Origin: Lepidodermella squamata
Taxonomy: Eukaryota; Animalia; Gastrotricha
Reading direction: 5' to 3'
NCBI GenBank assembly: GCA_047495785.1
Contig: JBLDXI010000012.1
Coordinates: forward strand, 434,001-498,000
DNA length: 64,000 bases
A model generated the notes under the pieces. It saw only the letters and a program-made list of their open reading frames with translations. It had not been told where the DNA came from and made no database searches. This document shows positions 36,276 to 56,626 of the stretch, in pieces. Made by a program: the position numbers and the translations under genes. How positions within the stretch are numbered: the first letter of the stretch is position 1; each line of letters begins with the position of its first letter.

Positions 36276-36719
36276 TTATTGAGACTGGCTGGCGGCGGCC
36301 TTCTTCTTGCCACCCGAAGCCGGCTTGGCAGCGGGTGCCTCGGCGGTCTTCTTCGGCAGCAAGACGGTCTGGATGTTGGGCAGAACACCGCCTTGGGCAA
36401 TCGTAACGTGCGATAGCAGCTTGTTTAACTCCTCGTCGTTGCGGATCGCCAGTTGGATGTGGCGAGGCACGATGCGCGTCTTCTTGTTGTCACGAGCGGC
36501 GTTGCCAGCCAACTCGAGCACTTCAGCGGCCAGGTATTCCATGACGGCGGCGAGGTACACGGGCGCACCCGCACCGACACGCTCGGCGTAGTTACCGCGC
36601 TTCAACAGACGGGTGATACGACCGACCGGAAACTGGAGACCGGCACGCGACGACTTGGTCTTCGCCTTCTGGCGGTTGGCCTTGCCTCCCTTACCACGAC
36701 CGGCAGCTGGAGCGGACAT
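36276..36719 (-). CDS. H2A: Histone H2A with extended H2A.X-like C-terminal tail ending SQSQ
   Basis: [31 protein letters not shown]; tail [16 protein letters not shown]. Confidence 0.97.
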
Positions 36720-37101
36720 TTTTGTTGTTTGAGTTTTAAAAGCGGAAAGAATGCGAAATTTGCAGTCTGAGCACGAACAATTTTGCCGACACCTGATTTT
36801 TCCTTATATACCCCGCTTTGGCATTTATTTCGCGCCTTTCGATTGTCTTTTGAAATTCGTATAATCTGTTTACGGCTTTATTAACCAATCGAGTCGTAAA
36901 AGCGCGCGCCTCATTACGGCACACGCACCAGTTTGATTGGTCACCCAGGCACGCGCCATAAATAATTTGAACACCGGATGCGCCAGGGTGCGCGCACTAA
37001 TGCCGGCCGGATGTTATAATGATAGCGAAATTGCGTGCATCGGTGTTCGGAAGCTCATAATAATTATTCGCTTGTCAAATCTCGCTTGATTTCAATCGAT
37101 C

Positions 37102-37476
37102 ATGTCGCCCAAAGTTACTGGTAAAGTCGCGTCGAAGGGTTCGAAGAAGGCCGCGAAGCCGAAGACCGCAGGCGAGAAGAAGAAGCGCCATCGCCGCCGC
37201 GAGTCGTACAACATCTACATCTACAAGGTGTTGAAGCAGGTTCACCCTGACACCGGCATCTCCGGCAAGGCCATGGCCATCATGAACTCGTTCGTCAACG
37301 ACATCTTCGAGCGCATCGCCCTCGAGTCGTCGCGCCTGGCCCACTACAACAAGAAGGCCACCATCAGCAGTCGAGAGGTACAAACGGCTGTGCGTCTCCT
37401 GCTGCCTGGTGAGCTCGCCAAGCACGCCGTTTCAGAAGGTACCAAGGCCGTCACCAAGTACACCAGCTCGAAATAA
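37102..37476 (+). CDS. H2B: Histone H2B
   Basis: [42 protein letters not shown]. Confidence 0.99.
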
Positions 37477-37648: not shown

Positions 37649-38226
37649 CTATTGAATTGGCAGCGGGCGACCATTAGGGTTGTTGAGGGCGACGAAACTG
37701 GTCGAAAGAGCGTTCAATACATGCCATGCCAAAATAGGAAGCATCATTTGACCAGCGAAAACTGAAATCGAATGAAAGGCGTAGTAACAGCTAGCGGTTG
37801 ACATAACAAGAAGACCGGATGTAACCGCGGCACCTCCAAACCATCCGTGTTCGAAGAAGAGCATTCCGAATAAGCGGTTAAGAGCCAAATTGACAAAGTA
37901 GAAAAAAGCCGGCATGGTGATACTCGTGTTTTTCGTCGCGTGCTGATACCAAATCAGGTAGGACGACGTACCCATTATAATGTAGACGATCAGCCAAACG
38001 ATTGGGAAGAGCCAATCAGGAGGCATCCACCTAAACAAAAAAACGTTATTACCCACTAAAATGAGGATGAAATAACTTATCATGGCTTTTTGACGCGATG
38101 GTACCAACTCGGAATCGCGAGATGACTACCGATAGGAATGAAACCGAGAAACAGCGGCAAGGCAATACAGAAGATGTAGGCCACAGTCGCCACGAGCCGA
38201 TTAACCGTGTAAACTTCGATGGTCAT
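37649..38226 (-). CDS. TSPO: TSPO paralogue T1 (divergent; intron 38031-38080 has an AT donor, possibly a pseudogene)
   Basis: WYHRVKKP..WMPPDWLFPIVW, hydrophobic helices, terminal NNPNG shared with the other copies. Confidence 0.75.
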
Positions 38227-38393
38227 AATTATTCCTAATTAAAAAAGATTAATTATCAAATTTTATTGCAAAGACGTGGTTGCACATGAGCCCTAAACTG
38301 TTGAGGAAGATGGGTTTCCAAGATTCAGTTTATTTCAGATGATTACTTCTAAAATTTGATGTTACTTTAGCAATAAAAGTGATGTAAAAATTG

Positions 38394-39073
38394 TCAAAAA
38401 AGAGGGCGGCTGTCATCGATAAATTCTGACTCGAAGCCTTTTCCGCTATTCGGATTGTTAATAGCGATCCAAGTGTTGATGACGAATTCCAGAACCAACC
38501 AACCGGCGTATGGCATCATCATGAAAGAGGCTACTCGCGAGATACGGTAGAACAAAATGACACAGGCGACAACAGCGAACCAAAGCAGGCCAACGTCGGC
38601 AGCGGCGGCTTTGAATAGTTGATGGCCGAAAAACAGTTGCGTGTAAGTGCTGTTCAGAACAAGCGTGACGACGTAGGATAGAGCGGCCCAACTAATGTCA
38701 GCCTGATGCTTCGAGTGATGCCGCCAAACCAGGTACGAAGCCATGCCACAGGCGAAGTAGATGAAGGTCCACATCGCGTGAAACAACCACTGCGGCGGCA
38801 TGAAACTAATAACAAAAACTAGGTTAAACAAAATCGCAGAAAATTGTATGCTTACGTTGGCTTCTTGAGACCGCCGTACCAATCGGCACGGTGAGCAAGC
38901 TGATAGCTATTCCAGCCGAGGAAAAACGGAAGCGCCATGCAGATGATGAACGCCGCCATGCAGCTTGTTCGCGAAGTTTTGCGTGGTAGCTGTTGCTGAT
39001 GAGCGACAGGGCTGAAATGCGGCAACATCGGCGTCATCGAGTTGGCTAACAACTGTTGCTTCATAGGATCCAT
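38394..39073 (-). CDS. TSPO: TSPO paralogue T2; intron 38806-38855
   Basis: WYGGLKKPTFMPPQWLF, MPYAGWL, NNPN. Confidence 0.88.
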
Positions 39074-39158
39074 GATTTTAGCAATAATGTGAAATGATGA
39101 GCTAGTTGTAATTCAGTCGGAAAGATGTGAATGCTCATTTACTGCTGCGTTTTTCAGC

Positions 39159-39187
39159 TTTATAAGCATAAGATCACGATTACGTCA
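39159..39187 (-). promoter_or_regulatory. Putative promoter of TSPO T2: TATAAA plus CRE/bZIP-like TGACGTAA
   Basis: Minus-strand TATAAAG at ~39158-39164 and TGACGTAA 39180-39187, about 90-110 nt upstream of the ATG. Confidence 0.45.
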
Positions 39188-39366
39188 CGCTGTTCTGTTT
39201 CTTTTAGACTCAATCGACCTTGTTTCGTAACAAAACAATGCAAAAAATCTTGAAAATTATTTTAATTATTTTTTTGATGCACTCATAAAAAACGACTTCG
39301 CAAACGCAGTTCGTTCGCAGCTGGTACGATGTTTCCTGAGAAAACACTATAACCCAAACTAATATA

Positions 39367-40255
39367 CCGTAATAAAGTGGTATGTTGTATGGGGCTACTT
39401 GAACGGGAAAATACTTTTCCGAAGCTAGCCTGTAGCTGTAGAACTTCAACTCCACAAATTTTATATCAGAATCATATCGCTTAATTGTCGAGGTTGAACC
39501 CCGATCGTAAACCAATGAAATCAACCCGTTCTAACCTAGCGATCGGGACCAAATGGCCGCATGACTATCTCACTCGAAGATGAACCATATATGGCACAAA
39601 TTAGGACGATGAACCATCGCCCACCTTGCGATACGCGCAAATTTTAGGTAGCATTTTCCACTTAAAAATCGGCCAAGTTACACCTTAAAATGCAGGTGAC
39701 TAATCTCTTGATACCGGCAGCAGATTTCCAATTCCAAGGTGTCTCATTCGATAGCTACCATTGAGAGGAATCTGTTGGTGGAAACGCTTATTGTACCATG
39801 GCCCCTAAATCCCCTAATTTCCCTAAATTAGCGTTCAAAATCTCGAGACCTAAAATCGATCGGCTGATGAAACCAATCGATGAAAATCGGAGATCACTTT
39901 TCGAATGCGGATAAATGGCGGTTCTAGTATCATTGTAGGAAAAGACATTCGATTTTGATTTTGATCGCATGGATTCCTTCGGTTACTCGCCTTGGATTCG
40001 GTACTCACCAAAATTCTACCGGAAATCGAACTTGTAAAAAAATTTCCCCCTAACTTTTCCCGTTTTTTTTATACTTGGTAATATGTTTCATTGGTGTAAA
40101 TTTTACACATCTAGGCCTGGCTTTCCTTGGGCTATCCAGCGGTATCCCACTCATGGGGTCTTTACCTTGCCGGCTTCGATAATTTGAGTGGCCAAAGTCA
40201 CCCCTTTTTGACATGTCAAAGTCACACCACTGTGCAAAGTCACCCCAAATTACGG
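39367..40255. mobile_element. Decayed non-autonomous pogo/Tc1-mariner-like element
   Basis: TA|CCGTAAT ... ATTACGG|TA termini; right end has three CAAAGTCAC(C/A)CC direct repeats (40193, 40217, 40235). Left boundary is weak. Confidence 0.5.
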
Positions 40256-40645
40256 TATATACACTTAAATGGGAAGTTGAGAATGTAATAGGGAAGTTGA
40301 GAAATTAAAGTTAAAAAGTGGAAAAATCTGTGTTTTTTCTTGGAAAATATGTGCTACAGAATGTTCCCGCTGCAATTTTTTTTCAACAAAAATCGCTGTC
40401 ATTTTTTATGTAGATTCGGCGACGAGGTGACTATTATCTGTCGCTTATTTCCGGTAATATGGTTCAGAAAAACTCTCATACAATATTCCATCTAAGCCAA
40501 ATTTTATTTGAAAGTGTATAAAGATTGTTCCGAATTCCAAGGAAATGAAAGCAAGTACAAATTACCAGCATTATTGCAGTAAACAAAAACAAGAGATTTA
40601 AGCATGCTTTAATACAAGCTGCTATAAAAAAGAAATTATGACAGG

Positions 40646-41284
40646 TTAAGGAGCATAACTCGGAGGTGCGTTTTGATTTTTGCCGTCCGGATTGTATATC
40701 ACAATGTAAACGGACAGCGAGCAAGCAATAGCCAGCCAGATCACGTAGGGAAACAAAAGTCCAGCAGCGATTCTTGAAACACGCCAAAATAGGACAATAC
40801 AGGCAACAACAACGATTATCAGCAGAATAATATCAACAAGACTCGCTACCAGCCAGCCCTTGCCAAAAAACATGGGTGTCCAAATGCCATTGAGCATGAG
40901 AGATACGGCGTAGACCAGCAGTGGGATGGTCACATTCGCGCCGTTTCGCACGTGGAAGAACCAGAGTAAGAAACTAGCGACGCCCATCAAAACGTAGAGT
41001 AAGGTCCAAACGACGGGAAACACCCAACCAGGCGGCATCCACCTTAATTACAGGGAAAATAATTAATTTTTCGATTTTTATGAAAAAAAATCAACTTACG
41101 GAGGCTTATTGATTCGTTTATACCAATCGTTGTCTTCAGTTCGGCCAACGCTTGTCGATCCGATGAAACCAATCACATTAGGGAAGGCGATCATAACAAT
41201 CGCAACTGCAACGGCGATGATTGGATTAACAGGGTATCTGCGCGGGCGGTCATCAGATTCATTTGCAATTTTTCCAGACTCCAT
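40646..41284 (-). CDS. TSPO: TSPO paralogue T3; intron 41043-41099
   Basis: WYKRINKPPWMPPGWVFPVVW, WTPMFF, FPYVIWL. Confidence 0.93.
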
Positions 41285-41401
41285 TATATCAAAATAACTA
41301 AGGATAGATTAGGAAATAATCAAAAAATATTTAGTGAAAATTCGATAATAAAAAACAACAATTTTTCAGTTCATATTGCGAGAATTCTTGAATAAAACCG
41401 G

Positions 41402-42031
41402 CTAATTTTGGCTTGGGCCAGTCGTCGTCGTGTCAATAAATAAACCGGGCTGATTTTTGCCGTCTTTGTTGTAAAGAGCCAGGTACGTGTTGAGCGAAAT
41501 AGCAATACACAGCCAAATCGCGTATGAAATCATCATAATACCAGCAGCGAGCGAGATTCGCCAGAAGAGCACAATGCAGGTGATCACAGCGAAAAACAGC
41601 AGAATCAAATCGGCGAGGCCGAGTTTGAACCACGCGTTGCCGAAAACAATCGGCGTCCAGTAGCCGTTAAGCAGAAGTTGAACGGCGTAGACAACAGCGG
41701 GTATCGTGATATCAACGCCCCGCCTGACGTGATTGAGCCATAGGAGGAAACTCGCCGTTCCCATGAGAATGTACAAAGTCGTCCAAACAACACCGAAAAC
41801 CCAGCCGGGCGGGGTCCATGGAGCTTTTTTGATGTGTTTGTACCAGTCTTGTTGCGTCACATCGCCGGTAGATAGCCCGCCGATGCCTCCGATAGCCAAG
41901 GGGTAGCTGATGCAAACGATCGCAACAAGAACGGCGAGGCAACAATTGACTTTCTTCGGACGAATATTGGGCGTGGACGCCGAAATTTCATCAGAAAATT
42001 CATTCTCGAGCTTGATTTTATCAGAATTCAT
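41402..42031 (-). CDS. TSPO: TSPO paralogue T4, intronless
   Basis: WYKHIKKAPWTPPGWVFGVVW, WTPIVFG. Confidence 0.93.
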   Translation of the reverse strand: MNSDKIKLENEFSDEISASTPNIRPKKVNCCLAVLVAIVCISYPLAIGGIGGLSTGDVTQQDWYKHIKKAPWTPPGWVFGVVWTTLYILMGTASFLLWLNHVRRGVDITIPAVVYAVQLLLNGYWTPIVFGNAWFKLGLADLILLFFAVITCIVLFWRISLAAGIMMISYAIWLCIAISLNTYLALYNKDGKNQPGLFIDTTTTGPSQN

Positions 42032-42191
42032 CTTTCAACATAAATTCTATAGGTAAATTTTAGAAATAAGCGAATAGGAATTTTTTCTTTGGTTTCTATG
42101 AACGATTTATGGGAAATTCACAACGACTTGATTTCATTGAGATTTTTCTCGAAAACCAACAAATTAATACGAAAAAACAGGCAGTGAGAAC

Positions 42192-42728
42192 TCAATTTGA
42201 TTTCTTTTCCTTCGGAATTCCATTCGGATTCTTGATTGCGATGTAGAGGTTCAACGTAAAGGCAAGAGATAGCCACGCGATGTAAGGTATCAATAAATTA
42301 GCGGCAGTTTCATTAATCTCTCGAAATTTGATGAAACTAGCAACTGCAGTTGTCCAAATGGCGACAATGTCAATAGCGCCAAGCCAAAATCGACCGGCGC
42401 CGAAAAACAGCGGACCCCAAAGGCTGTTGAAAACCAAATTAGCCGCATAGGTAGCCAAAGCGATTTGAACAGCCTCGGTTTTGTCGTCGTATTGGCGAAC
42501 GATTAGGAAGGACGAAGTGCCCATCAACAGGTATAGGATAGACCAAACCGGGCCGAAAACCCAATCAGGAGGATTCCATGGGGCCTTCTTAATCCTTTTG
42601 TACCACGTATCGATGGCTTTCCAGTTCATTTTTGAGACAGCGCTCGGGAAGAATCCGATCCCGAGAGGTATGCCAACGCATGCTATCCATAGTAGGGTGA
42701 GACAAAATCCAGTGGTACACTCTGTCAT
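42192..42728 (-). CDS. TSPO: TSPO paralogue T5, intronless
   Basis: WYKRIKKAPWNPPDWVFGPVW, IPYIAWLSLAFTLN. Confidence 0.95.
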   Translation of the reverse strand: MTECTTGFCLTLLWIACVGIPLGIGFFPSAVSKMNWKAIDTWYKRIKKAPWNPPDWVFGPVWSILYLLMGTSSFLIVRQYDDKTEAVQIALATYAANLVFNSLWGPLFFGAGRFWLGAIDIVAIWTTAVASFIKFREINETAANLLIPYIAWLSLAFTLNLYIAIKNPNGIPKEKKSN

Positions 42729-42890
42729 AATTTAAAGCTCTAAAATAAATAACAAAAAATTAAAGAAGGAAATTTTCATTGAAATTAACAAGAAAAAACA
42801 TCAAGACATACAACAAGGCAAAAAAGCACAAGCTAATGAGATAATAACAAAGGCAGTTAGGGAAGATCTGAACCGAAACCAGATACTTTT

Positions 42891-43469
42891 TTAATTCGAC
42901 TTCTTGCTTTGGGGAGCCCCATTCGGGTTATTGATGGCAACGTAGAGATTCAGTGTGAATGCGAGGCTGAGCCATGCGATGTATGGCACCAATAAATAAG
43001 CAGCGATTTCATTAATCGCTTGAAACTTGATGTAGCTGGCTACGGCAGTAGCCCAGATGGCAGCAATGTCAAGCGCTCCGAGCCAGAAGCGGCCATGGCC
43101 GAAGAACAGCGGAGTCCAGATGCCATTGAAAAACAAATTGGCCGCGTAAGTAATCAGGGCGCATTGAACAGCTTCAGTTTTTTCGTCATACTGGCGTAGA
43201 ACCAGGTAAGAAGCCGTTCCCATTAGGATGTATAGAACAGTCCAGACAGGGCCGAAAACCCAGTCAGGTGGGTTCCATCTGTAATAAAGGATTATTTCAA
43301 CAAAGCTAATAGTAATTTATTCAAGCACTTACGGAGCCTTCTTAATTTTCTGATACCAGGTCTTGACTGCATCCCTGGTAATAGTCGAGCCGTGGAATCC
43401 CATACCGAGAGGAATGCCAACGCAGGCCATCCACATTAAAGTTAAGCACCAGCAAGTGCAGTCAGACAT
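42891..43469 (-). CDS. TSPO: TSPO paralogue T6; intron 43279-43332
   Basis: WYQKIKKAP|WNPPDWVFGPVW, WTPLFFG, VPYIAWLSLAFTLN. Confidence 0.95.
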
Positions 43470-43752
43470 TTTTAATGTTTCACTATTAAAATAATTCGTA
43501 TTGATTGAAAATAAAACAATTCATTTACCTCAATCAAAATAATTCAGGGTGAATACTCCCATTTTCTGGGGTGACGTTAAGCGAAAATTTAGCGAGAGCA
43601 AGATTTTCACAACGAGTAAAAGATTGCATCGAAGAAAAGCACCGCGAAGATCACATATACGAAAAAAAAATTCAGAAAAAATAGCAGTTTCAAGCTGTTC
43701 AATCGAGAGAAATCTGTCAAAACAAATCAGTAGCCAGTTTTTAGACAAGCCA

Positions 43753-44277
43753 TTAAGTAGTTTTCTTGATTGGCCGAGGCCCATTCGGATTCGCGATAGC
43801 CACGTAAACATTGGCCGTTGACCCAATTGTCAGCCAAATCATGTAAGGAATCAGAAAATACGGGGCATATTCATCGACTTCCGCGTATTTGACCATGCAC
43901 AGGGCAGTAGTTATCCAGACTCCAATAATGTCAAATGAAGCCAGCCAAAATCGGCCCAAGTAGAAGTAAAAGGTGGTCCAAATAGCTTGGAGAAATGCAT
44001 TTACAGCATAGATAGTCAAAGCCGCCTTAACCAATTCGGGTTTTTCGTTGTATTGACGAAGGACAAGGAAAGAAGCGGTACCAATGCAAAGATAGAGAAT
44101 GATCCAAGCCGGCACATAAGCCCAGCTTGGAGGTGCCCAGGGTGCTTCTTTCACTCTGTTTCGCCATGTTTTAAGCGAACCTTTAGCTATCTGCGCTCCG
44201 ATAAATCCGCCGACCAGTGGCACAGCAACATTGGCCAGCCAAAGCAAGACCTGCTGATATATGGGCCACCCAATCAT
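43753..44277 (-). CDS. TSPO: TSPO paralogue T7, intronless
   Basis: APWAPPSWAYVPAW, IPYMIWL; first ATG at 44277. Confidence 0.92.
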   Translation of the reverse strand: MIGWPIYQQVLLWLANVAVPLVGGFIGAQIAKGSLKTWRNRVKEAPWAPPSWAYVPAWIILYLCIGTASFLVLRQYNEKPELVKAALTIYAVNAFLQAIWTTFYFYLGRFWLASFDIIGVWITTALCMVKYAEVDEYAPYFLIPYMIWLTIGSTANVYVAIANPNGPRPIKKTT

Positions 44278-44356
44278 TTCTACTTTAATTTCTCTAGTCA
44301 GCAAAAAATAATCAATTTTAAAGCGATTTTAGGCCGGAAAAATAAAGAAATTTGAT

Positions 44357-44977
44357 TCAATTTGCTTTTTTCACAGAGTCTTTCGAAACGGCAGGGTTAT
44401 TGATGGCCATGTAAAGGTTTAAAGTGAGCGAAAACGTTAGCCAGGCTATATAAGGCACCAACAAATAGGCAGCAGTCGTTGAAATCGGGTAAAACAGAGC
44501 AATTGTTGCAGCGATTGTTACCCACAAAGCGAGCAGGTTGAACAATGCCAGTGATAACAAGCCTTTCCCGAAAAATAGGAAGTTCCATAGCAGGTTCAAA
44601 AACAAACAGATTGCGTAAGTAATAGCCGGCAGGGTAATACTAACGCCATTGGATGCATGCTCATGCCATACTATATGAATCGAAAATCGGTGGTTTTCGT
44701 TAATTAGATTACTTCGTTAATTAATCACCTAAATACGATGCGTAGCCAGATGTTATGTATAAAGGCATCCAAACTACAGGGAACACCCAGTCCGGAGGAT
44801 TCCAGCTAAAATAATAAATTAATTTGTGCTTGTGAGATAAAATTAATAAAATTACGGAGCCTTTTTAACATCTTTGTACCACGTTTGTTTAGCTTTCTTA
44901 CTGGATTTTCCATTGATGATGCCAATGATAACAGGAAGCAAAACAAACGCGGCAAGTGTGCACGTATCGCAAGTCAT
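44357..44977 (-). CDS. TSPO: TSPO paralogue T8; introns 44806-44855 and 44671-44728
   Basis: WYKDVKKAP|WNPPDWVFPVVW, VPYIAWL. Confidence 0.92.
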
Positions 44978-45155
44978 TTTGCAAAATATGTTAATAGCAC
45001 CTATCCAGAAAATAGTATGGGGTCTTTAGCAATTGATTAAAAATAACGAATCACTGAAAAAGAATACATGGAAGAAGCGGCAACCGAGTATTCAAAATAA
45101 TTGACACCGGAGATCGATAATCAGAGGGAAGATTTGAAAACTCGAAACCAGAGTG

Positions 45156-45768
45156 TTATTTTTGTTTATCTCCAGTTTTAGGAATTCCATCGTTGTGAAG
45201 AGCGACGTAAACGCAGAGGGTTGTAGCCAGGGTAACCCAAAACATGTAAGGCGACAACAAATAGGCAGCTGTTGCCGAAATCGGATAAAATAAGACGATG
45301 CAGGCAGCAACAGATACTCCCAATAGAAAAGAGACAATTGTGGCCAATTTGAAATACCCCCAGTGGAAGAATATTGGAATCCAAATCAAGTTGAAAAACA
45401 GGCTGGAAATGTAGGCGATTGACGGCAACGTAATGTCAACGCCGTGTTTGCTATGCTCTTGCCAAACTAATTGTCAAGTACTCATTAGCAATATTTATCA
45501 AAAAGACAGTTTCTTACCTAAATGAGTGGCATAGCCAGAAGTTAGATATATTATAAACCAAGCAACTGGGATAACTTTCTGCGGAGGATGCCAACTAGAA
45601 AATTTGATTTTTAATTTCAATAATAATCCTAATTCTTTGAACTTACGGTGCCTTTTTAAGATCCTTGTACCACGTTTTTGTAGCTTTCGATGTTAATCCA
45701 AAACCTGACCAGCCTAGTGCAAAAGGGACGAGAATGTGGGCGGCCAAAGACCACGGTGAATCAGTCAT
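45156..45768 (-). CDS. TSPO: TSPO paralogue T9; introns 45595-45646 and 45467-45517
   Basis: WYKDLKKAP|WHPPQKVIPVAW, WIPIFF, SPYMFWV. Confidence 0.9.
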
Positions 45769-45980
45769 TTTGTCAAGGCAAAATATCTAATAAATTATAT
45801 GTAAGAACTCATTGCCTTTACTTTAAATAGAAATCATCACTCTTCTTATAGTATAGGCCCAAGACAAAATTCAGAAATTAAAATCGGCAGTTTTATAGCA
45901 AGATATCATTGAAGACGATCAAATAGGAAGACGATTGTCAAAATGTCATGAAATCAAAGCGCAAAAATTATTAGCAGTTT

Positions 45981-46549
45981 TTATGATGACTTAGCATGAG
46001 GTCCATCAGGATTGTAGACTGCGATGTAGAGGTTAAGCGTAAATGCGAGCGAGACCCACGAGATATACGGTATCAACAAGTAAGCCGCAACAGTTGAGAT
46101 CGGGTAGAACACGATAATAGAGCCTAAGATGGTTAACCAGAGCACTGCCATTTCGGCCGCGGCGGTTTTAAACATGCCGAACCAAAAGAATATCGGCGTC
46201 CATAAGGTGTTCAGCACAAGACTTGATCCGTAAACAACAGCTGGTAGGGTGATATCAATCTTGTGTTCATTGTGTTCGCGCCATATCAAGAATGATGAAA
46301 TGCCCATAAGTGTGTAGAGCGTGGTCCAAACGGGGCCAAACACCCAATTCGGAGGATTCCATCTGCAATACAGAATTATCAACAATGCTGTATATTTTTT
46401 CATAGAGCATAATGTGCTTACGGAGCGCGCTTAATGCGTTTATACCATGTTTGAATGGCGCCTCTCGTTAAAAAAGAACCGCTAAATCCGATAAATAATG
46501 GGATGCCAATAAAACCAGATAGAGCGACAATTTCGTCATAAGACAGCAT
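45981..46549 (-). CDS. TSPO: TSPO paralogue T10 (first in transcription order); intron 46363-46421
   Basis: WYKRIKRAP|WNPPNWVFGPVW, WTPIFF, IPYISWVSLAFTLN. Confidence 0.95.
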
Positions 46550-46691
46550 TTCCAGTGACAAGAAATAATTGAACAACAAATATATAAAATCTACGGAAAA
46601 ATAAGCTTGTTGTTATTATGATGTCAAGTAAGAATAATTGCTTTTCTCCCTCAAGTGTGCAGTTCTTTAGTGTTAGCGCCAACCGTCTCGC

Positions 46692-49274: not shown

Positions 49275-49915
49275 ATGTTAAAAGTCGGTCAAACGTTGTA
49301 TTCATTTCGTATCGTTTCGTCGCGATTTTTCAGTGCGAAAGCTTCCCCAAGGGTGTTTTTTGACGTCTCTGTTGATGATAAGAAGGAAGGAAAGATAGTC
49401 TTCGAACTGTTTTCTGACACTGTGCCGAAAACTGCTGAAAACTTCCGCGCCCTATGCACGGGTGAGAAAGGTACTGGAAAATCGGGAAAGCCCTTACACT
49501 TCAAAGGTTCAATCTTCCATCGAGTTATTCCCAAGTTTATGGCACAGGGCGGTGACTTTACTCGCGGTATTTCTGTCTTTAAATGAATATAATTCTGTTT
49601 TTAATCGTTAAATATTGTGCAGGTAATGGCACTGGTGGTGAAAGCATTTACGGCGCCAAGTTCCCTGATGAGAACTTTAAATTGAAGCATGATATTCCCG
49701 GTCTTTTATCTATGGCGAATGCTGGTCCCAATACTAATGGTTCCCAGTTCTTCATTACTTTTGTGCCTTGCCCTTGGTTAGACGGGAAACACGTTGTATT
49801 TGGTAAAGTTGTAGAGGGACTGGAAATCTTGAAGAAACTTGAAGCTCTCGGCTCTGCCTCTGGTCAAACCAAGAAGCGTATCGTTGTTTCAGACAGCGGC
49901 GAAGTCAAGGCCTAG
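49275..49915 (+). CDS. PPIF: Cyclophilin PPIase with probable mitochondrial presequence (cyclophilin D-like); intron 49567-49622
   Basis: R/S-rich, acid-free N-terminus; [52 protein letters not shown]; divergent loop GKSGKPLH. Confidence 0.85.
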
Positions 49916-50013
49916 AATCCAATTGTGTCGCTCATACACAAAATTAATCGAACTTTGTGCCTTTAAATAATTTACTAAACATTTTGTTTTGTATTAGATA
50001 GTTTTACTTTGCT

Positions 50014-51012
50014 ATGTCCGGGAAGAAATCTGGTGGTGAGGAAGCGGAGCCGTCTGATCAGTTTGACGGATCTGATGTGGAACAGTCTGAAGATGTTTCA
50101 GAGGTTGAACAAAGTCCTGGAAATATGTCTAGCGACGGCGAAAATGCCGTGCGTCAGCGCCGCAACCAGTCCGGTGAAGAGGAGTTCTCCGATGGTGGCT
50201 CACCTTTGCCCGCTAACAATGATACAGATGATGAAAAGGGAAAAGTAAATGTTTTTTTCTGGGGCGTTGTAGCTCTTGTTATGGCTGTCGGTTTGCTTGG
50301 TTTGTATTACGCCGGCCAACCCGATAGCCCTGCTTCATCCCACCCGCTCATGGCTGACGTCAGCAATGTGATCAAGAAATTCAACTTATCTGCGTCGGTT
50401 AATAAAAATATGATGGCAACGTTCAGTGAGATGATTGAAAGCCAGCGACCCGTCGTTGTTTTTGTTGCTTCATCGGAACCCGGCCACGTCAACCCAGCTG
50501 TTACTCAGTGCCTTTTCAAGTCACTTATTCGTAAGTTTAGCGATCACTACAAGCCCAAAAGTGAAGCGAAGAAGATCGACCTTCGAAATTCGCTCACTTC
50601 GATCAAGGAGAAGTGCACTGAAGGCGATGTTTCGCGTTGTGTTTCGAATAAATTTATCGAGTTGTTTAAAACTTCGCTTGAAAACACCAAAGTGCTGTGG
50701 ATTGATGGCTTGGAAGCTTTGAACTACGATCCTGGACTCATTGTATCGATGAACAGCTTTGCTGACCACAGCGAAGCCCCGGTTAAACAATCTTTGATTT
50801 TCATTACCGCCAACTTTGAGGGTGATGCCAAGAAGCCGATTACCACTGCTACAAAGTCGTACTTCCAAAAGATCTGGACCAAGAATTCAAAGGGGTGCAA
50901 AGTCGGTGATATTTCTTGCATGACCACCGACAATTTCCATGCTGTTTGGACTCGCATTGGCGAGTTTGTGATCGACGCTAAGGGTCTTTCAAGCTTGCCA
51001 GACTTTTGTTAA
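50014..51012 (+). CDS. TOR1AIP: Torsin-1A-interacting protein-like (LAP1/LULL1), type II membrane protein
   Basis: Acidic N-terminus, one TM helix, luminal AAA+-like domain with RPVVVFVA, FADHSEAP (cf. YCDHENA) and VWTRI (cf. LWSRI arginine finger). Confidence 0.75.
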   Translation: MSGKKSGGEEAEPSDQFDGSDVEQSEDVSEVEQSPGNMSSDGENAVRQRRNQSGEEEFSDGGSPLPANNDTDDEKGKVNVFFWGVVALVMAVGLLGLYYAGQPDSPASSHPLMADVSNVIKKFNLSASVNKNMMATFSEMIESQRPVVVFVASSEPGHVNPAVTQCLFKSLIRKFSDHYKPKSEAKKIDLRNSLTSIKEKCTEGDVSRCVSNKFIELFKTSLENTKVLWIDGLEALNYDPGLIVSMNSFADHSEAPVKQSLIFITANFEGDAKKPITTATKSYFQKIWTKNSKGCKVGDISCMTTDNFHAVWTRIGEFVIDAKGLSSLPDFC

Positions 51013-51290
51013 TTGAGGGTCAAACTCTCTGAACAGCAAATCACGTTTTTTGAGAGTCCAATCTCAACATTTTGGTGGTTGGAATAACAATAATGGAGAG
51101 CAATATCCTATATATCCTATATAAAATATCTGAAATACGTGTGCATAGAAGCTCCGATTCATGTGTTCTCGCTTTCCATTTGATGAAAACGCTTTCAGAA
51201 TATCATCCGGGTGTAAATTTAACAATAGTCATTGCTTATTTATGGATTTTTTTTCTGTATTTCATAGGTTTTTATCCTTAACTAACCCTG

Positions 51291-54200
51291 ATGGCCCTCA
51301 AACCCCGGCCAAAAGTGATAGCCGACGAGTTATTTGAAAGATGGCTTCGAAAGCCGGGGACTTTGGATCTTCTCAATGCGGCTCTCAACAAAATCGCCAA
51401 AGGTAATTTTTCTCTCGATTTGATTGTTTTTTTGAATAAATGAATTTGATAGGCGAAACACCTCTTGATTCAATCGGCTCCGGTGCAAGTTCACCCCAAG
51501 CCTCTGAAGTTCCAGCGCTTTCCCTCGGTTCTTCTTCACGACCCTCAGCCGTTGGATTGGCGGCGCCGCCTAAGGGCTCGTCGAGTCCAGCTGCGACTAA
51601 CAGTCCACGCCGCCAAGTCTTCACGGAACAAACCAACAAAGTTCTGGTGAGTTGCTATTGTTGACTTGCAATTTTCCCAATCTCATCGATTTTCCCATCA
51701 TCGTCGTCTCATCCGGGACACAGATAATGAGATCAGCCTGTTTCTTAAGGACTAGTGCAGTAGGAAAATGCAGTCTAGAAAACGAAAAAAAAATCAATTT
51801 GTTCATTCGAATGAACACAAAATATACAGCAGTAATGCGCCTTGATAACGACGATATTAGTAATTATTTTACAAAATATTGAAATCGCTCTCAGCATCGG
51901 TTATCAGGAGCATATTATCAATAGCAAATTAACGCGAATTGTTGCTATATTTATTTTCAGTTGAGCGACCTCAATTCACAACAGTTATATATTTTTCGTA
52001 CCTCCATATAATTATTTGTCCACTTTATTGTCAATTTTGGTGAAAACTCTTAGCCGGTGTTCTACTTGCAACGCCAACATCTCGAACCCCTTAGTAGTAC
52101 ATGATGCCAGCGCATAGATATGCCTGTTGACGGTGATTTTCAAACACTCGTTACTTACAACTTGTATCTTCGTGCTGCACAAAAGAAGCCGAGGTGTTGT
52201 TGATGGTGTTGTTGTTGTTGTTATTTGTCGTCGTGGCCAGGCATCAAATGATATTCCCAAGGCACTCTCTGTCGCACGTATAAACACATGCGTATCTCGT
52301 ACAAAAGAGATTGACGTCAAAGAGGTGGCACAAGCACGCCATCGTTTTAGAGCTTATTTATCTCCAGCGATTGGATGCTAAAGTTGAGTAAGTGTTGTTT
52401 GCCCCCTTTTTCACTTGTGCTTATTCGTTGCGCGCACCTCGTAGCAGGAAAAAAAACGAAACGATGCATCAGCGTTTCGACTCATCAGGCAGCTATTTTT
52501 TATATACACCCCAGTATAACAGAAACCAGCCTTGTAGCCGTAATTTGACCCAACTGCGCGGCTAATGTGTCTGCCTTATTACTATACTATTAAGTAGTTG
52601 GTATATCTATAACGCATTTGCCTCACCTTTTCTTTATCATATACTATATAAAAACCATATGCTGTAGGAGATACTTAACCATCATAGTTGACCTTCCTTT
52701 ATCTTCATTAAGGCAGATTATAGTTCGTTAAGCGTAGGCTAATCATTTGTCCCAATCACTGCTGCTGGTTTCGATTAGTAGCAGCCTATTGCGATCGGTG
52801 TTTTTGCGCCGATATTAATAAATCTACCTGCGTCTGCGTTACGAGATTGCCGATAACAAGCTGCTATCATGTAGGGAAAAAATGCCTTGTAATTAGCCGG
52901 CTTGAGTCTTCTCTCATGACGCGCGTTCGATCAAGCTTTTAATATCTCTCTCTATGACGCCCTGTTCATCTCAATTCATTTAAAATCAGCTGCACTTAGT
53001 CCGGATAGGTTGCTATCTCTGCGAAGCCTTTAAAATTGATTTTTTCTCTCTTCATTTTGCGTAGCTTTGAGTGCACTACATAATTGAAAGTTTCTCGCGT
53101 CGTCGTCTTCTGACGGCTGTACATGATCAGCGATAACCTCGCATCGTTTTGCTGCTGTCTATATGGGCGACACGGTAGCTGCTTGTAGTAGCAGTGATTT
53201 TGAGAAGCTCGTAGCATCGCCTGTTTATTACGTGACGGTGCGAGCCGCTCCTCTGCGCGCTACTTTGATCGATCACCGCGCCTCACGCTCGGTTCACGCG
53301 TGCGATCTGTGCCTCGCCGCGACTAGTCTTGGTTATTCCGACTGCGCTTGCTCCATCCACTACGGCTTCTGTACGTCAGTCGTGTTGGAAAAAGCAAAAG
53401 ACGACGAGTCAACGCAGCTTCTCTGCCCTGTTCCTGTACCTATCAAACTCGTAGACCCCTCCTGTCCGCCCGTTAAACCCGCCCCACCGAAACGAACCTT
53501 TAAACAGCCTATTAGCCAGCACTTGTTAGATTGGCAAAGCAAGAGCGCTAACATGTTACTAGGCGGGCTGGATTCAGCCTCGAAACAGCCACCTCTAGCC
53601 CTGCTGTCTTCGGCGGCGAATGCAGCGAAATCGCTGATTGATCGAGTGAAGGCGGGGGAAGGATTCCGCAGCAGTGCAACGAGTTCTGCGACGTCTTCAT
53701 CGCCTCCGAATCCTTCGCTATTCTCGTCATTTGCATTCTCGCCGGGCGGTCCGCCGAAATCGCCAGCAGACGGTCCGCCTTTCCACAATTTCGGCCGGCA
53801 CAGCCTGTCTAATATTCACGGCGATTTGCCACCGCCGCCTAATCACGCTCCTCACGCTCCTAACGAGCATTTCATCGTGCGAGTCCCGGCCACTCACATG
53901 GGTCTGAGCGGGCCGCTGAGTCCAACATCGACGTCAGCCGCATTTTTAAGGCGGTCTTCGGCTCCGCCTTCAGTCGCTCCATTATCACATAATTCGGTTA
54001 ATAAACAGGATTTGGCATTGATAGCAATTTTAGGCGATTGTGTCCCCGGGATATGGGCATCAAATTACAATCATCTCTCATCTTATTTTTTCGCGCTCAA
54101 CTAAAAAATTAATCATCCATTAAGAGGGACGCATCAATCACGAGATAAGTAAAACCAGGATTTTATCGATTGAAGAATTTTTTATTCATTTTAATGATTA

Positions 54201-56626
54201 TTTTTCTTATTTTTTGCAGTCACAGCCATCGCCAAATCAATCGCAGTCCAATCAGTCTTCATCGAACGGTCTGATATCACCTCAACAACAGTCGACCCCT
54301 CTGACCAATGGGCGGCCGCAGCAGCAGCAAAGCTCGCAGCCGGCTCAAACCGTCAACCAGAAACAACCCCTCGCGCCTTCGATTGTTCCGCCTTCCAGCA
54401 GCGACAAGTTGGGCGCCTCTCAGCAGCAACCGGCTAGTCTTCAGAAGTCACTGCCGCCTATGGATGCTCACAAGCAGTTGGCATCTATCAACAGCATCAG
54501 CATTCCTCGGTTTTTCTACCCCCTCGGCAAGCCGGTGTCTAGCGAACTGCTGCGGCAACAAACCGACCGCCTTGTCGCGGCCTTCGACAAACTCGGCAAC
54601 GTGGCCACGCGCGTTCAAGTCGGTGAAATCGCCAAAGATTGCCTTGGTTTAGGCCGATATTGGCGCGTACCGCTGTTTTTGAAAGCTCAAAACCTATCAG
54701 GCGTTGTTGATAGGTCAGAATACGTCACGAAAGACGCCTTCCTTAACATGTGGAAAAAGTGAGTGTAATTTCATCAGAAATAAACTTCTATTTTCAAGTT
54801 ACATTTGTCCACTTTTTTTACGGTGGACGACTTGGACCCAAATTTAGCTAATCAGATACTTTGCCCAATATCAAATCTTTCATAAATCTTCCACCTTAAA
54901 AAAGTGAAAATTTTAATTTTCGCCAACCAAAATTCGCATTTGATCTCAATTTTTAATTTTAATCGTTTAATTTTTAATTTTTTAGAATGACCACGCAGTG
55001 TTTCGACAATGCTTCGAGATTTATCTGGCTATTAAGCTCCTCGTCCCCTGCCGTGTTACCCTCGTCGTTGGTCCAGCAATCGACCGGCCAACCTGTCTCG
55101 GCAGCGCCTAAGCGGCCGGGCACAGCCGCCGGCTCGCTGACCGCCCCGGTGCCGTCGTCTTGCCTGTTCGCGTTGCCACAAGACTTCATTCCAATGATGC
55201 AGGACATCGTCGACAATCACCCGAGTCTCGATTTTCTGCGCGACGCCAAGGAGTTCCACTCGCGGTACATGCACACGGTGATCGCACGCATCTTCTACGC
55301 TATCAACCGGTCGTGGTCGGGCCGCCTCGTCGTCGCCGAGTTGCGGCAGTCGCGTTTCCTCGACGCGTTGGCGCGGCTCGACGACGAAGACGTGAACCGC
55401 TCGACCGAGTTCTTCTCCTACGAACACTTCTATGTGATATACTGCAAATTCTGGGAGTTGGACAAAGACCACGACCTGCTGATTACGCGAGATGAATTAT
55501 CTACCCACAACAATCATGGTAAGGAATAATTTTTTAATTGAATTTTCACTCTATTAATAATTTGTGTGTAGCAATCAGCCCTCGCATAATCGATCGCATA
55601 TTTTCCGGTGCTGTGACAAAGGGGCGTTGCTTGAAGGAAGGAAAGATGAGCTACAACGAGTTTGTGTGGTTTCTAATATCCGAGGAGGACAAGAAGCACC
55701 CGACCAGCATCGAGTACTGGTTCCGATGCATGGATCTCGACGGCGATGGCTATTTGACCACGTTTGAGATGGAGTTTTTCTACGAGGAACAACACCAGCG
55801 GCTCATGCAGATGAGCATAGAGCCGTTGTCGCTGAAAGATCTCATCTGCCAACTGCTCGACATGGTCAACCCGAAAATACCCGGCAAAATCACGCTGTCC
55901 GACTTGAAAGCGTGCCGGCTGAGCGACGTTTTCTTCAACACTTTCATCAACATTTACAAGTACATCGATTACGAACAGAAGGACCCGTTCTCGAATTTAC
56001 GAGAGCTTGAACAAATGGGCGACTCGAACGTGCCGGTCACCGACTGGGAGCGATTCGCCGCGCAAGAGTACATGGCCCTCGTTGCCGAGGAAACGAGTAA
56101 CGACGGCGGAACTGGTGGCAATGGCGGCAATGGCATGGGCTCTTCCGCGGGCAATTAGTGAGTTGAATTTGCTTTCAATACCCAGTTTTTAATTGATATC
56201 AAACATGAAATAATAGCTCATCCGGCGGTCAGTCGCAATTTTAAATCGCTTGATGTCTCCATCCCTTAAAACCGACAATAGGTACCTGCCTTCCTTTAGC
56301 CCTCAATCATATAAACATCGTTGTTTTCGTGTATGATTGTTGTCGTTATGTGCGTGTTTAATTATTTACGAATTTATTTACCAAATGCTTAGGCGTCCTT
56401 ATCGTCATAATAGCTTCGGTTTAGTTCCTTTATATACAGCAGCAATGTACATATTTGTGCATCACGTCACTAATAATTTTGGCATAGAGTGGCATATAGT
56501 TGGATCAATATTTATGATAGCGTCGATTAACTTGTTTTTCTTCTGTTTTTCAGCAACCAGAATGACGATGGTGATGCTTCACTGGCTCGAATATCCGGTT
56601 TAGGCTGTTCGGACGACGAATTTTAG
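51291..56626 (+). CDS. PPP2R3: PP2A regulatory subunit B'' (PR70/PR72 family), multi-exon, alternative C-termini
   Basis: Exons 51291-51402 (ADELFERWL), 51453-51646, 54220-54758 (IPRFFYP), 54986-55518 (FSYEHFYVIYCKFWELD), 55572-56157 (SIEYWFRCMDLDGDG); terminal exon either 56217-56244 or 56554-56626. Confidence 0.92.
53163..53996 (+). CDS. Probable alternative first coding exon of PPP2R3 inside intron 2
   Basis: Long Ser/Pro-rich ORF with its own ATG, upstream acceptor ~53064 and phase-0 donor (TCG|GTTAAT, 53997) compatible with the 54220 exon. Confidence 0.55.

Follow-up and report, generated by a model that had tools for sequence, protein, structure and literature searches.

Why should one stretch of an animal genome carry ten genes for the translocator protein (TSPO) in a row? 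The literature assigns one TSPO gene to invertebrates and two to birds and mammals (PMC3790746, PMC8243069), and a few isoforms have been described in some plants and cyanobacteria (PMC8243069). We approached this question in a 64-kb window, by which we mean the whole stretch of DNA analyzed, namely, positions 434,001 to 498,000 of contig JBLDXI010000012.1 (assembly GCA_047495785.1) of the gastrotrich Lepidodermella squamata. An earlier note on this DNA, made from its letters alone, had stated that animals usually have one or two TSPO genes; this agrees with the single gene of the nemertean Tubulanus and with published counts of one to two (PMC3790746). Our analysis indicates that the ten TSPO genes of the array probably form an old tandem family specific to this lineage, among whose members the function of the protein has been divided. 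No report of an animal TSPO tandem array of this kind was found in the literature searched, and the paper on the gastrotrich genome is silent on TSPO. An apparent literature match for Tridacna was false, since the text reads "TsPOT."

The ten genes, which encode proteins of the TspO/MBR type, all lie on the minus strand within positions 37649 to 46549 of the window. We named them A to J in order of decreasing coordinate, corresponding to T10 to T1 in the earlier note, whose count and common strand were confirmed and whose limits proved exact to the base: position 37649 is the first base of the stop codon of J, and position 46549 is the A of the ATG of A. The Pfam profile PF03073 matched the main coding pieces of all ten genes (E values from 1e-16 to 1e-42), with scores of 60 to 145 bits against a gathering cutoff of 24, and a six-frame hidden Markov model scan of the whole window detected no TSPO loci besides these ten. 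Every gene model starts with ATG, ends in a stop codon, and has a length divisible by three. The resulting proteins comprise 169 to 209 amino acids, and pairwise identities among the paralogs range from 26 to 77%. The N-terminal extensions announced for T2 to T4 are real, since I, H, and G have 209, 193, and 209 amino acids, respectively, versus 169 to 178 in the others. The spacers between stop codon and next ATG measure, in order from A to J, 212, 178, 79, 283, 162, 160, 117, 1,572, and 167 nt. The long H-I spacer (39074 to 40645; 1.57 kb) is devoid of TSPO homology and divides the array into A to H and I to J. Rfam gave no match in the segment 36000 to 50000, which includes this spacer, and an exact look-up of gene F among public assemblies returned no record.

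The family is also represented in related species. The best database match (P0001) is located on metagenome contigs from ENA (L001 to L003) that contain five TSPO genes in tandem (rel1 to rel5), two of which have introns at the same places as the window genes. The genes that flank the array beyond A, at 49332 to 56147 (a cyclophilin-type peptidyl-prolyl isomerase and a PP2A B''-like EF-hand subunit according to Pfam, with two unassigned genes between them), are collinear with positions 1851 to 7491 of L001 (tblastx), and the TSPO locus is therefore orthologous between the window and L001. Within this microsynteny, the PP2A B''-like subunit is 88 to 91% identical and the cyclophilin about 77%; a sulfite-oxidase-like gene adjoins the L001 array, and the window has no such gene at that place. 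A third species is represented by a 1.6-kb Joint Genome Institute (JGI) contig, L085, in which the orthologs of I and J (sp3_I and sp3_J) are adjacent, occupying positions 45 to 1441 and separated by 210 nt. Neither ortholog is interrupted at the sites of the window introns, which means either that those introns are missing in this species or that the contig is a spliced transcript of two genes.

Window genes and orthologs are 50 to 57% identical, and the ten window copies, together with the seven sequences orthologous to them in the two relatives, constitute a single clade (support, 100/98). Well-supported pairs in the trees were A-rel1, I-sp3_I, and J-sp3_J; G and H grouped with rel3 and rel4, B and C grouped loosely with rel2, and D, E, and F had no ortholog partner. 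A scan of JGI metagenome contigs with an alignment of G, H, rel3, and rel4 retrieved 80 loci, all with at most 42% identity; judging by this low identity, they are likely bacterial, and no eukaryotic relatives were added. The proposal that the array is a novelty of a single species is thus weakened, since orthologous arrays occur in at least two related species and the expansion belongs to the lineage. The earlier note had held that similar expansions being common in related animals would speak against its reading; this is in part what we observed, in that at least two relatives share the array.

Expression and variation were assessed over 40640 to 46620, the segment that holds genes A to H, by comparing two read runs in the form of contigs, one of DNA (X1) and one of cDNA (X2). 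The nature of X2 is evident from the presence of a SMART adapter and of a poly-T loose end. Its joints skip the introns of A, C (both introns), E, and H exactly, with CT..AC ends; in A, for instance, the spliced joint is 46362/46422. Splicing of intron 2 of B is shown by a loose end at 45470, and splicing of intron 1 of this gene was not seen in X2. Six of the seven introns in A to H, distributed over five genes (A, B, C, E, and H), were thus spliced in X2, and none of these joints was present in X1. The earlier note had named a lack of expression of most copies as something that would refute it; all eight copies examined, including the intronless D, F, and G, are covered by cDNA contigs. A transcript end was identified for E, with a poly-T loose end at 42760 and the hexamer AATGAA at 42780, and lies 32 nt before the ATG of F. 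In X2, contigs span the B-C and C-D spacers, although proof of a single transcript cannot come from contigs. Every ATG is preceded, at a distance of 8 to 40 nt, by a pyrimidine-rich tract with a terminal AG, and no spliced leader was present among the listed X2 loose ends of genes A to H. As to structural variation, an X1 contig skips 140 nt of the F-G spacer (42032 to 42171; joint from 42031 to 42172), which suggests a second haplotype that carries a deletion, and small indels are clustered at 43662 to 43723. At 42525 to 42573 in gene F, an alternative contig was present in both X1 and X2, with 11 mostly synonymous differences in 50 nt; its source is either allelic divergence or the conversion of a patch from gene E.

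The neutral evolution of most copies, which the earlier note had likewise named as refuting its reading, is not what we found. Between runs and window, 40 of 106 differences are listed, and 32 of the 39 coding ones among them are synonymous; this applies to all five differences listed for E and, with respect to X2, to seven of the eight for G. The rate of synonymous substitution (dS) exceeded 1.5, and was hence saturated, for every paralog pair, so that the ratio of nonsynonymous to synonymous rates (dN/dS) between paralogs is uninformative for most pairs; for E and F it was 0.06. Since identities of 26 to 77% coincide with saturated dS, the duplications are old. Taken together, the preponderance of synonymous differences, the low identities, the saturated dS, and the E-F ratio indicate that the copies are old and constrained, being neither recent nor homogenized, and purifying selection on the array is, as judged from these sequence comparisons, strong. 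Gene J differs in that its branch length is 0.87, compared to 0.33 in its ortholog sp3_J (approximately 2.6-fold), and that it lacks residues that its ortholog retains. Its AT-AG donor (see below) and long branch suggest that J may be decaying.

Introns are absent from genes D, F, and G; there is one in each of A, E, H, I, and J, and there are two in B and C. The intron common to A, E, H, I, and J is in phase 2 and lies within the proline codon of the motif KKAP/W.PP (slashes mark intron positions); B and C possess this intron and an additional phase 1 intron at YL/VW. Introns are 50 to 59 nt long and of the GT-AG type in eight of nine cases, J being the exception. Spliced genes were analyzed exon by exon, whereas whole-protein folds and searches were carried out with the intronless copies and with database proteins. 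Gene A (45981 to 46549; 169 amino acids; Pfam E value, 1.3e-35) consists of exons 46549 to 46422 and 46362 to 45981, which enclose a GT-AG phase 2 intron at 46363 to 46421. Three exons make up each of B (45156 to 45768; 169 amino acids; pocket motif WHPPQKVIPVAW), with GT-AG introns at 45595 to 45646 and 45467 to 45517, and C (44357 to 44977; 170 amino acids), with GT-AG introns at 44806 to 44855 and 44671 to 44728. The intronless copies are D (43753 to 44277; 174 amino acids; E value, 5e-33), F (42192 to 42728; 178 amino acids; E value, 1.4e-42), and G (41402 to 42031; 209 amino acids, including the N-terminal extension; E value, 2.9e-38). Two exons separated by a GT-AG intron are present in E (42891 to 43469; 174 amino acids; intron, 43279 to 43332), H (40646 to 41284; 193 amino acids; intron, 41043 to 41099), and I (38394 to 39073; 209 amino acids; intron, 38806 to 38855).

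Gene J (37649 to 38226) encodes 175 amino acids if the intron at 38031 to 38080 is removed. Its donor reads ATAAGT (AT-AG), and the junction KKPW/WMPP was set by homology to the J ortholog sp3_J on L085, which is continuous at this site (KKPWWCPP); an alternative in-frame GT donor exists at 38104. In rel5, a possible J ortholog, the donor position has GTAATT. Directly downstream of J, at 36276 to 37476, is a divergent histone pair (H2A on the minus strand and H2B on the plus strand), the G+C content of which is higher than that of the array. Elsewhere, the window contains long-exon genes for a MIF4G/MA3 protein, a RING-ankyrin-BRCT protein, and a BAR-PH-ArfGAP-ankyrin protein. The 64-kb window is eukaryotic.

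We then asked what the copies have in common and where they differ. The AlphaFold2 model of F (predicted local distance difference test score, 86.7) matched the bacterial proteins RsTSPO and BcTSPO in Foldseek with a probability of 1.00 and TM-scores of 0.72 to 0.85, and the RsTSPO matches include the heme-bound structure 8E7X; mouse TSPO (2MGY) aligned over residues 5 to 157 with an E value of 5e-23. The five-helix TSPO fold is thus predicted for F by the model and, by alignment, for the other nine copies. Residues W51 and W138 of BcTSPO are needed for the binding and photo-oxidation of protoporphyrin IX (PpIX) (PMC10598825), and their equivalents (columns 52 and 142) are tryptophan in all ten copies, as is the WY..KKP / W.PP.W loop conserved in all of them. 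These conserved residues suggest that the array proteins may bind tetrapyrroles such as PpIX or heme. Conservation at the 37 family-conserved columns is highest in H (34 kept) and then falls through E (33), F (31), A (30), G (29), C (27), I (26), B (24), and J (23) to D (22), the most altered copy. This ranking bears out the division made in the earlier note into near-canonical copies (T5, T6, and T10, that is, F, E, and A) and altered copies (T1, T2, T7, and T9, that is, J, I, D, and B), to which H (T3), on which that note was silent, can be added as near-canonical. The motifs it had quoted were all located, WHPPQKVIP in B, FMPPQWLF in I, and PWNPPDWVFGPVW and PYIAWLSLAFTLN in E and F.

The paralogs differ chiefly within the W.PP.W....W segment and at the site corresponding to human A147, the variable cavity-lining sites being the equivalents of mouse L49, A50, P51, I52, and A147. 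These differences are subfamily specific and are preserved between species: A and rel1 have the same W.PP.W....W segment (WNPPNWVFGPVW), and I and sp3_I share FMPPQW(L/V)FHA(M/V)W, in which Phe replaces the first Trp, together with Glu at the A147 position. I further possesses a His in its motif of transmembrane helix 2 (TM2), FMPPQWLFHAMW, and both the TM2 His and the A147-position Glu are retained in its ortholog on L085 (P0241). A motif resembling the cholesterol recognition amino acid consensus (CRAC), L/V-x-Y-x-K/R, follows TM5 only in F, G, and H; CRAC was therefore ruled out as a family feature, as it is absent from seven of the ten copies. Of the diversified tetrapyrrole/sterol repertoire that the earlier note had envisaged, the diversification is supported by diverged, genuine paralogs with species-conserved pocket differences, whereas the sterol part is weakened by the occurrence of the CRAC-like motif in only three copies.

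A word search with F returned mostly bacterial matches at 45 to 50% identity, and in smaller trees three high-GC bacterial TspOs adjoined the family, with support of 97/97 in a 61-row mixture-model tree. These observations would suggest a horizontal transfer of a bacterial TspO into the lineage, followed by intron gain and expansion, and this scenario is also favored by the intronless state of several copies and by the Tubulanus gene, which shares neither intron position of the window genes. However, when 24 more bacterial rows (relatives of P0266) were included, the three high-GC TspOs moved into bacterial clades, and the family became sister to the canonical eukaryotic TSPOs of plants, fungi, Capsaspora, and animals in a well-supported joint clade (97/90). 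An approximately unbiased (AU) test did not reject a clade uniting the family with all canonical eukaryotes (p = 0.11), and the best profile matches outside the family were plants, chytrids, Capsaspora, and animals. In addition, intron 1 appears ancestral to the family, since it is common to seven copies as well as rel1 and rel5. Bacterial origin, suggested by the word search and two trees, was thus dropped after the 24 rows had been added, and we consider it very unlikely. The family did not nest within the animal TSPO clade, and grouping it with canonical animals alone was marginally rejected in a smaller set (AU test, p = 0.021; a group named after the tree was seen). We interpret the trees as showing a long-stemmed TSPO lineage of eukaryotic, probably animal, origin.

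How, then, is the multiplicity of copies best explained? That the locus is a gene graveyard, in which most copies are dead or dying and evolve neutrally around one or two working genes, might be suspected from the AT-AG donor, the longest branch, and the lost residues of J and from the altered conserved columns of B, D, and I. Yet ten reading frames have remained open despite saturated dS, cDNA contigs cover A to H with splicing in five of them, the listed coding differences are mostly synonymous (32 of 39), and a distant species retains the altered motifs of I and J. For A to H, this reading is largely refuted, and for the array as a whole we regard it as highly improbable. It is quite unlikely that the array serves primarily as an operon-like, cotranscribed unit that raises TSPO dosage through interchangeable paralogs. 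The short spacers (79 to 283 nt with one exception), the pyrimidine-rich AG tracts before each ATG, the poly(A) end of E shortly before F, and the cDNA contigs across the B-C and C-D spacers would fit such a unit, but identities of 26 to 77%, saturated dS, and species-conserved subfamily differences are at odds with interchangeable copies, and no leader was present among the listed loose ends. Cotranscription and diversification are not mutually exclusive. An expansion for sterol rather than tetrapyrrole binding, as proposed for the cholesterol-transporting role of mammalian TSPO, appears unlikely: TSPO does bind cholesterol in mammals (PMC3790746) and F, G, and H carry the CRAC-like motif, but the remaining copies lack it, and the invariant residues are those tied to porphyrin binding and catalysis. 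A more specific proposal is that the array is a dedicated heme/porphyrin handling system, in which subfamily I would coordinate heme, given its conserved TM2 His and the cavity Glu at the human A147 position, and the other subfamilies would handle different tetrapyrroles, for example, dietary chlorophyll catabolites. We consider this possible, albeit doubtful.

We therefore favor an old tandem family with divided function. The ancestral array would have been multimembered before the split from at least two relatives, and later duplications would have given rise to B/C, D/E/F, and G/H. Nine copies appear intact and under purifying selection, with J possibly decaying, and an ancestral tetrapyrrole-binding role would have been split between paralogs with different ligand preferences and perhaps with different cell types or membranes. 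Gene structures, cDNA coverage of eight copies, selection, fold, orthology, and synteny are documented above, whereas tetrapyrrole binding, subfunctionalization, and any physiological role are what we infer. Several points weigh against this explanation. (i) The tally of synonymous differences rests on 40 of the 106 differences. (ii) The cDNA depth, which at about 800 to 2,000 over D is among the highest over 40640 to 46620, derives from contigs and hence provides no ranking of genes by expression. (iii) X2 also covers spacers, and unprocessed RNA, read-through RNA, or DNA carry-over could account for part of its signal. (iv) The placement outside the canonical animal TSPOs may be a long-branch effect. 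(v) The same pocket positions vary between TSPOs of different organisms, so that a new ligand is not implied.

Canonical animal TSPO (TSPO1; mouse 2MGY, human), including the single-copy TSPO of invertebrates, belongs to the same Pfam family as the array, has the five-helix fold, and shares with the array the WY..KP / W.PP.W loop, LN..W.P.FF, and PY..W. The array differs in having ten tandem copies instead of one, in being 35 to 50% identical to the canonical proteins, in branching outside the plant/fungal/Capsaspora/animal clade, and in its C terminus, IA..NP.G, as opposed to the canonical ..W(R/K).N CRAC region. Vertebrate TSPO2, the erythroid paralog of birds and mammals, is likewise a TSPO duplicate with an altered ligand pocket, and the PPQK of copy B resembles PPNK in coelacanth (Latimeria) P0191, labeled "translocator protein" by NCBI and "Translocator protein 2" by UniRef. 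However, TSPO2 arose as one additional gene in a vertebrate duplication (PMC3790746, PMC8243069), whereas the array comprises at least five ancient subfamilies that show no relationship to TSPO2 in the trees. Bacterial TspOs (RsTSPO 4UC1/8E7X and BcTSPO 4RYI) are the best structural matches of the F model, and their tryptophans are kept, but the array genes have spliceosomal introns and poly(A) and, in the tree with the added bacterial rows, are not nested in bacteria. The moss PpTSPO1 and its paralogs, as well as Fremyella, also provide cases of several diverged isoforms, tied to stress and porphyrin metabolism (PMC8243069), and the plant AtTSPO has an N-terminal extension like those of G, H, and I. 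The multiplicity in plants and cyanobacteria concerns another kingdom and independent duplications, and a ten-gene tandem array was not found reported there.

TSPO is of major importance as a target of drugs and imaging, yet its physiological function is disputed. With one or two TSPO genes per animal, its roles are not separable genetically. The array offers a panel of natural variants for binding, structural, and localization studies, and, provided that its copies are ligand specific, would reveal the cavity residues on which tetrapyrrole selectivity depends. The family also represents a deep-branching, fast-evolving case that a quick tree would misread as bacterial transfer. Should the heme/porphyrin proposal be true, gastrotrichs would be a natural system in which TSPO function has been genetically split into separable parts.

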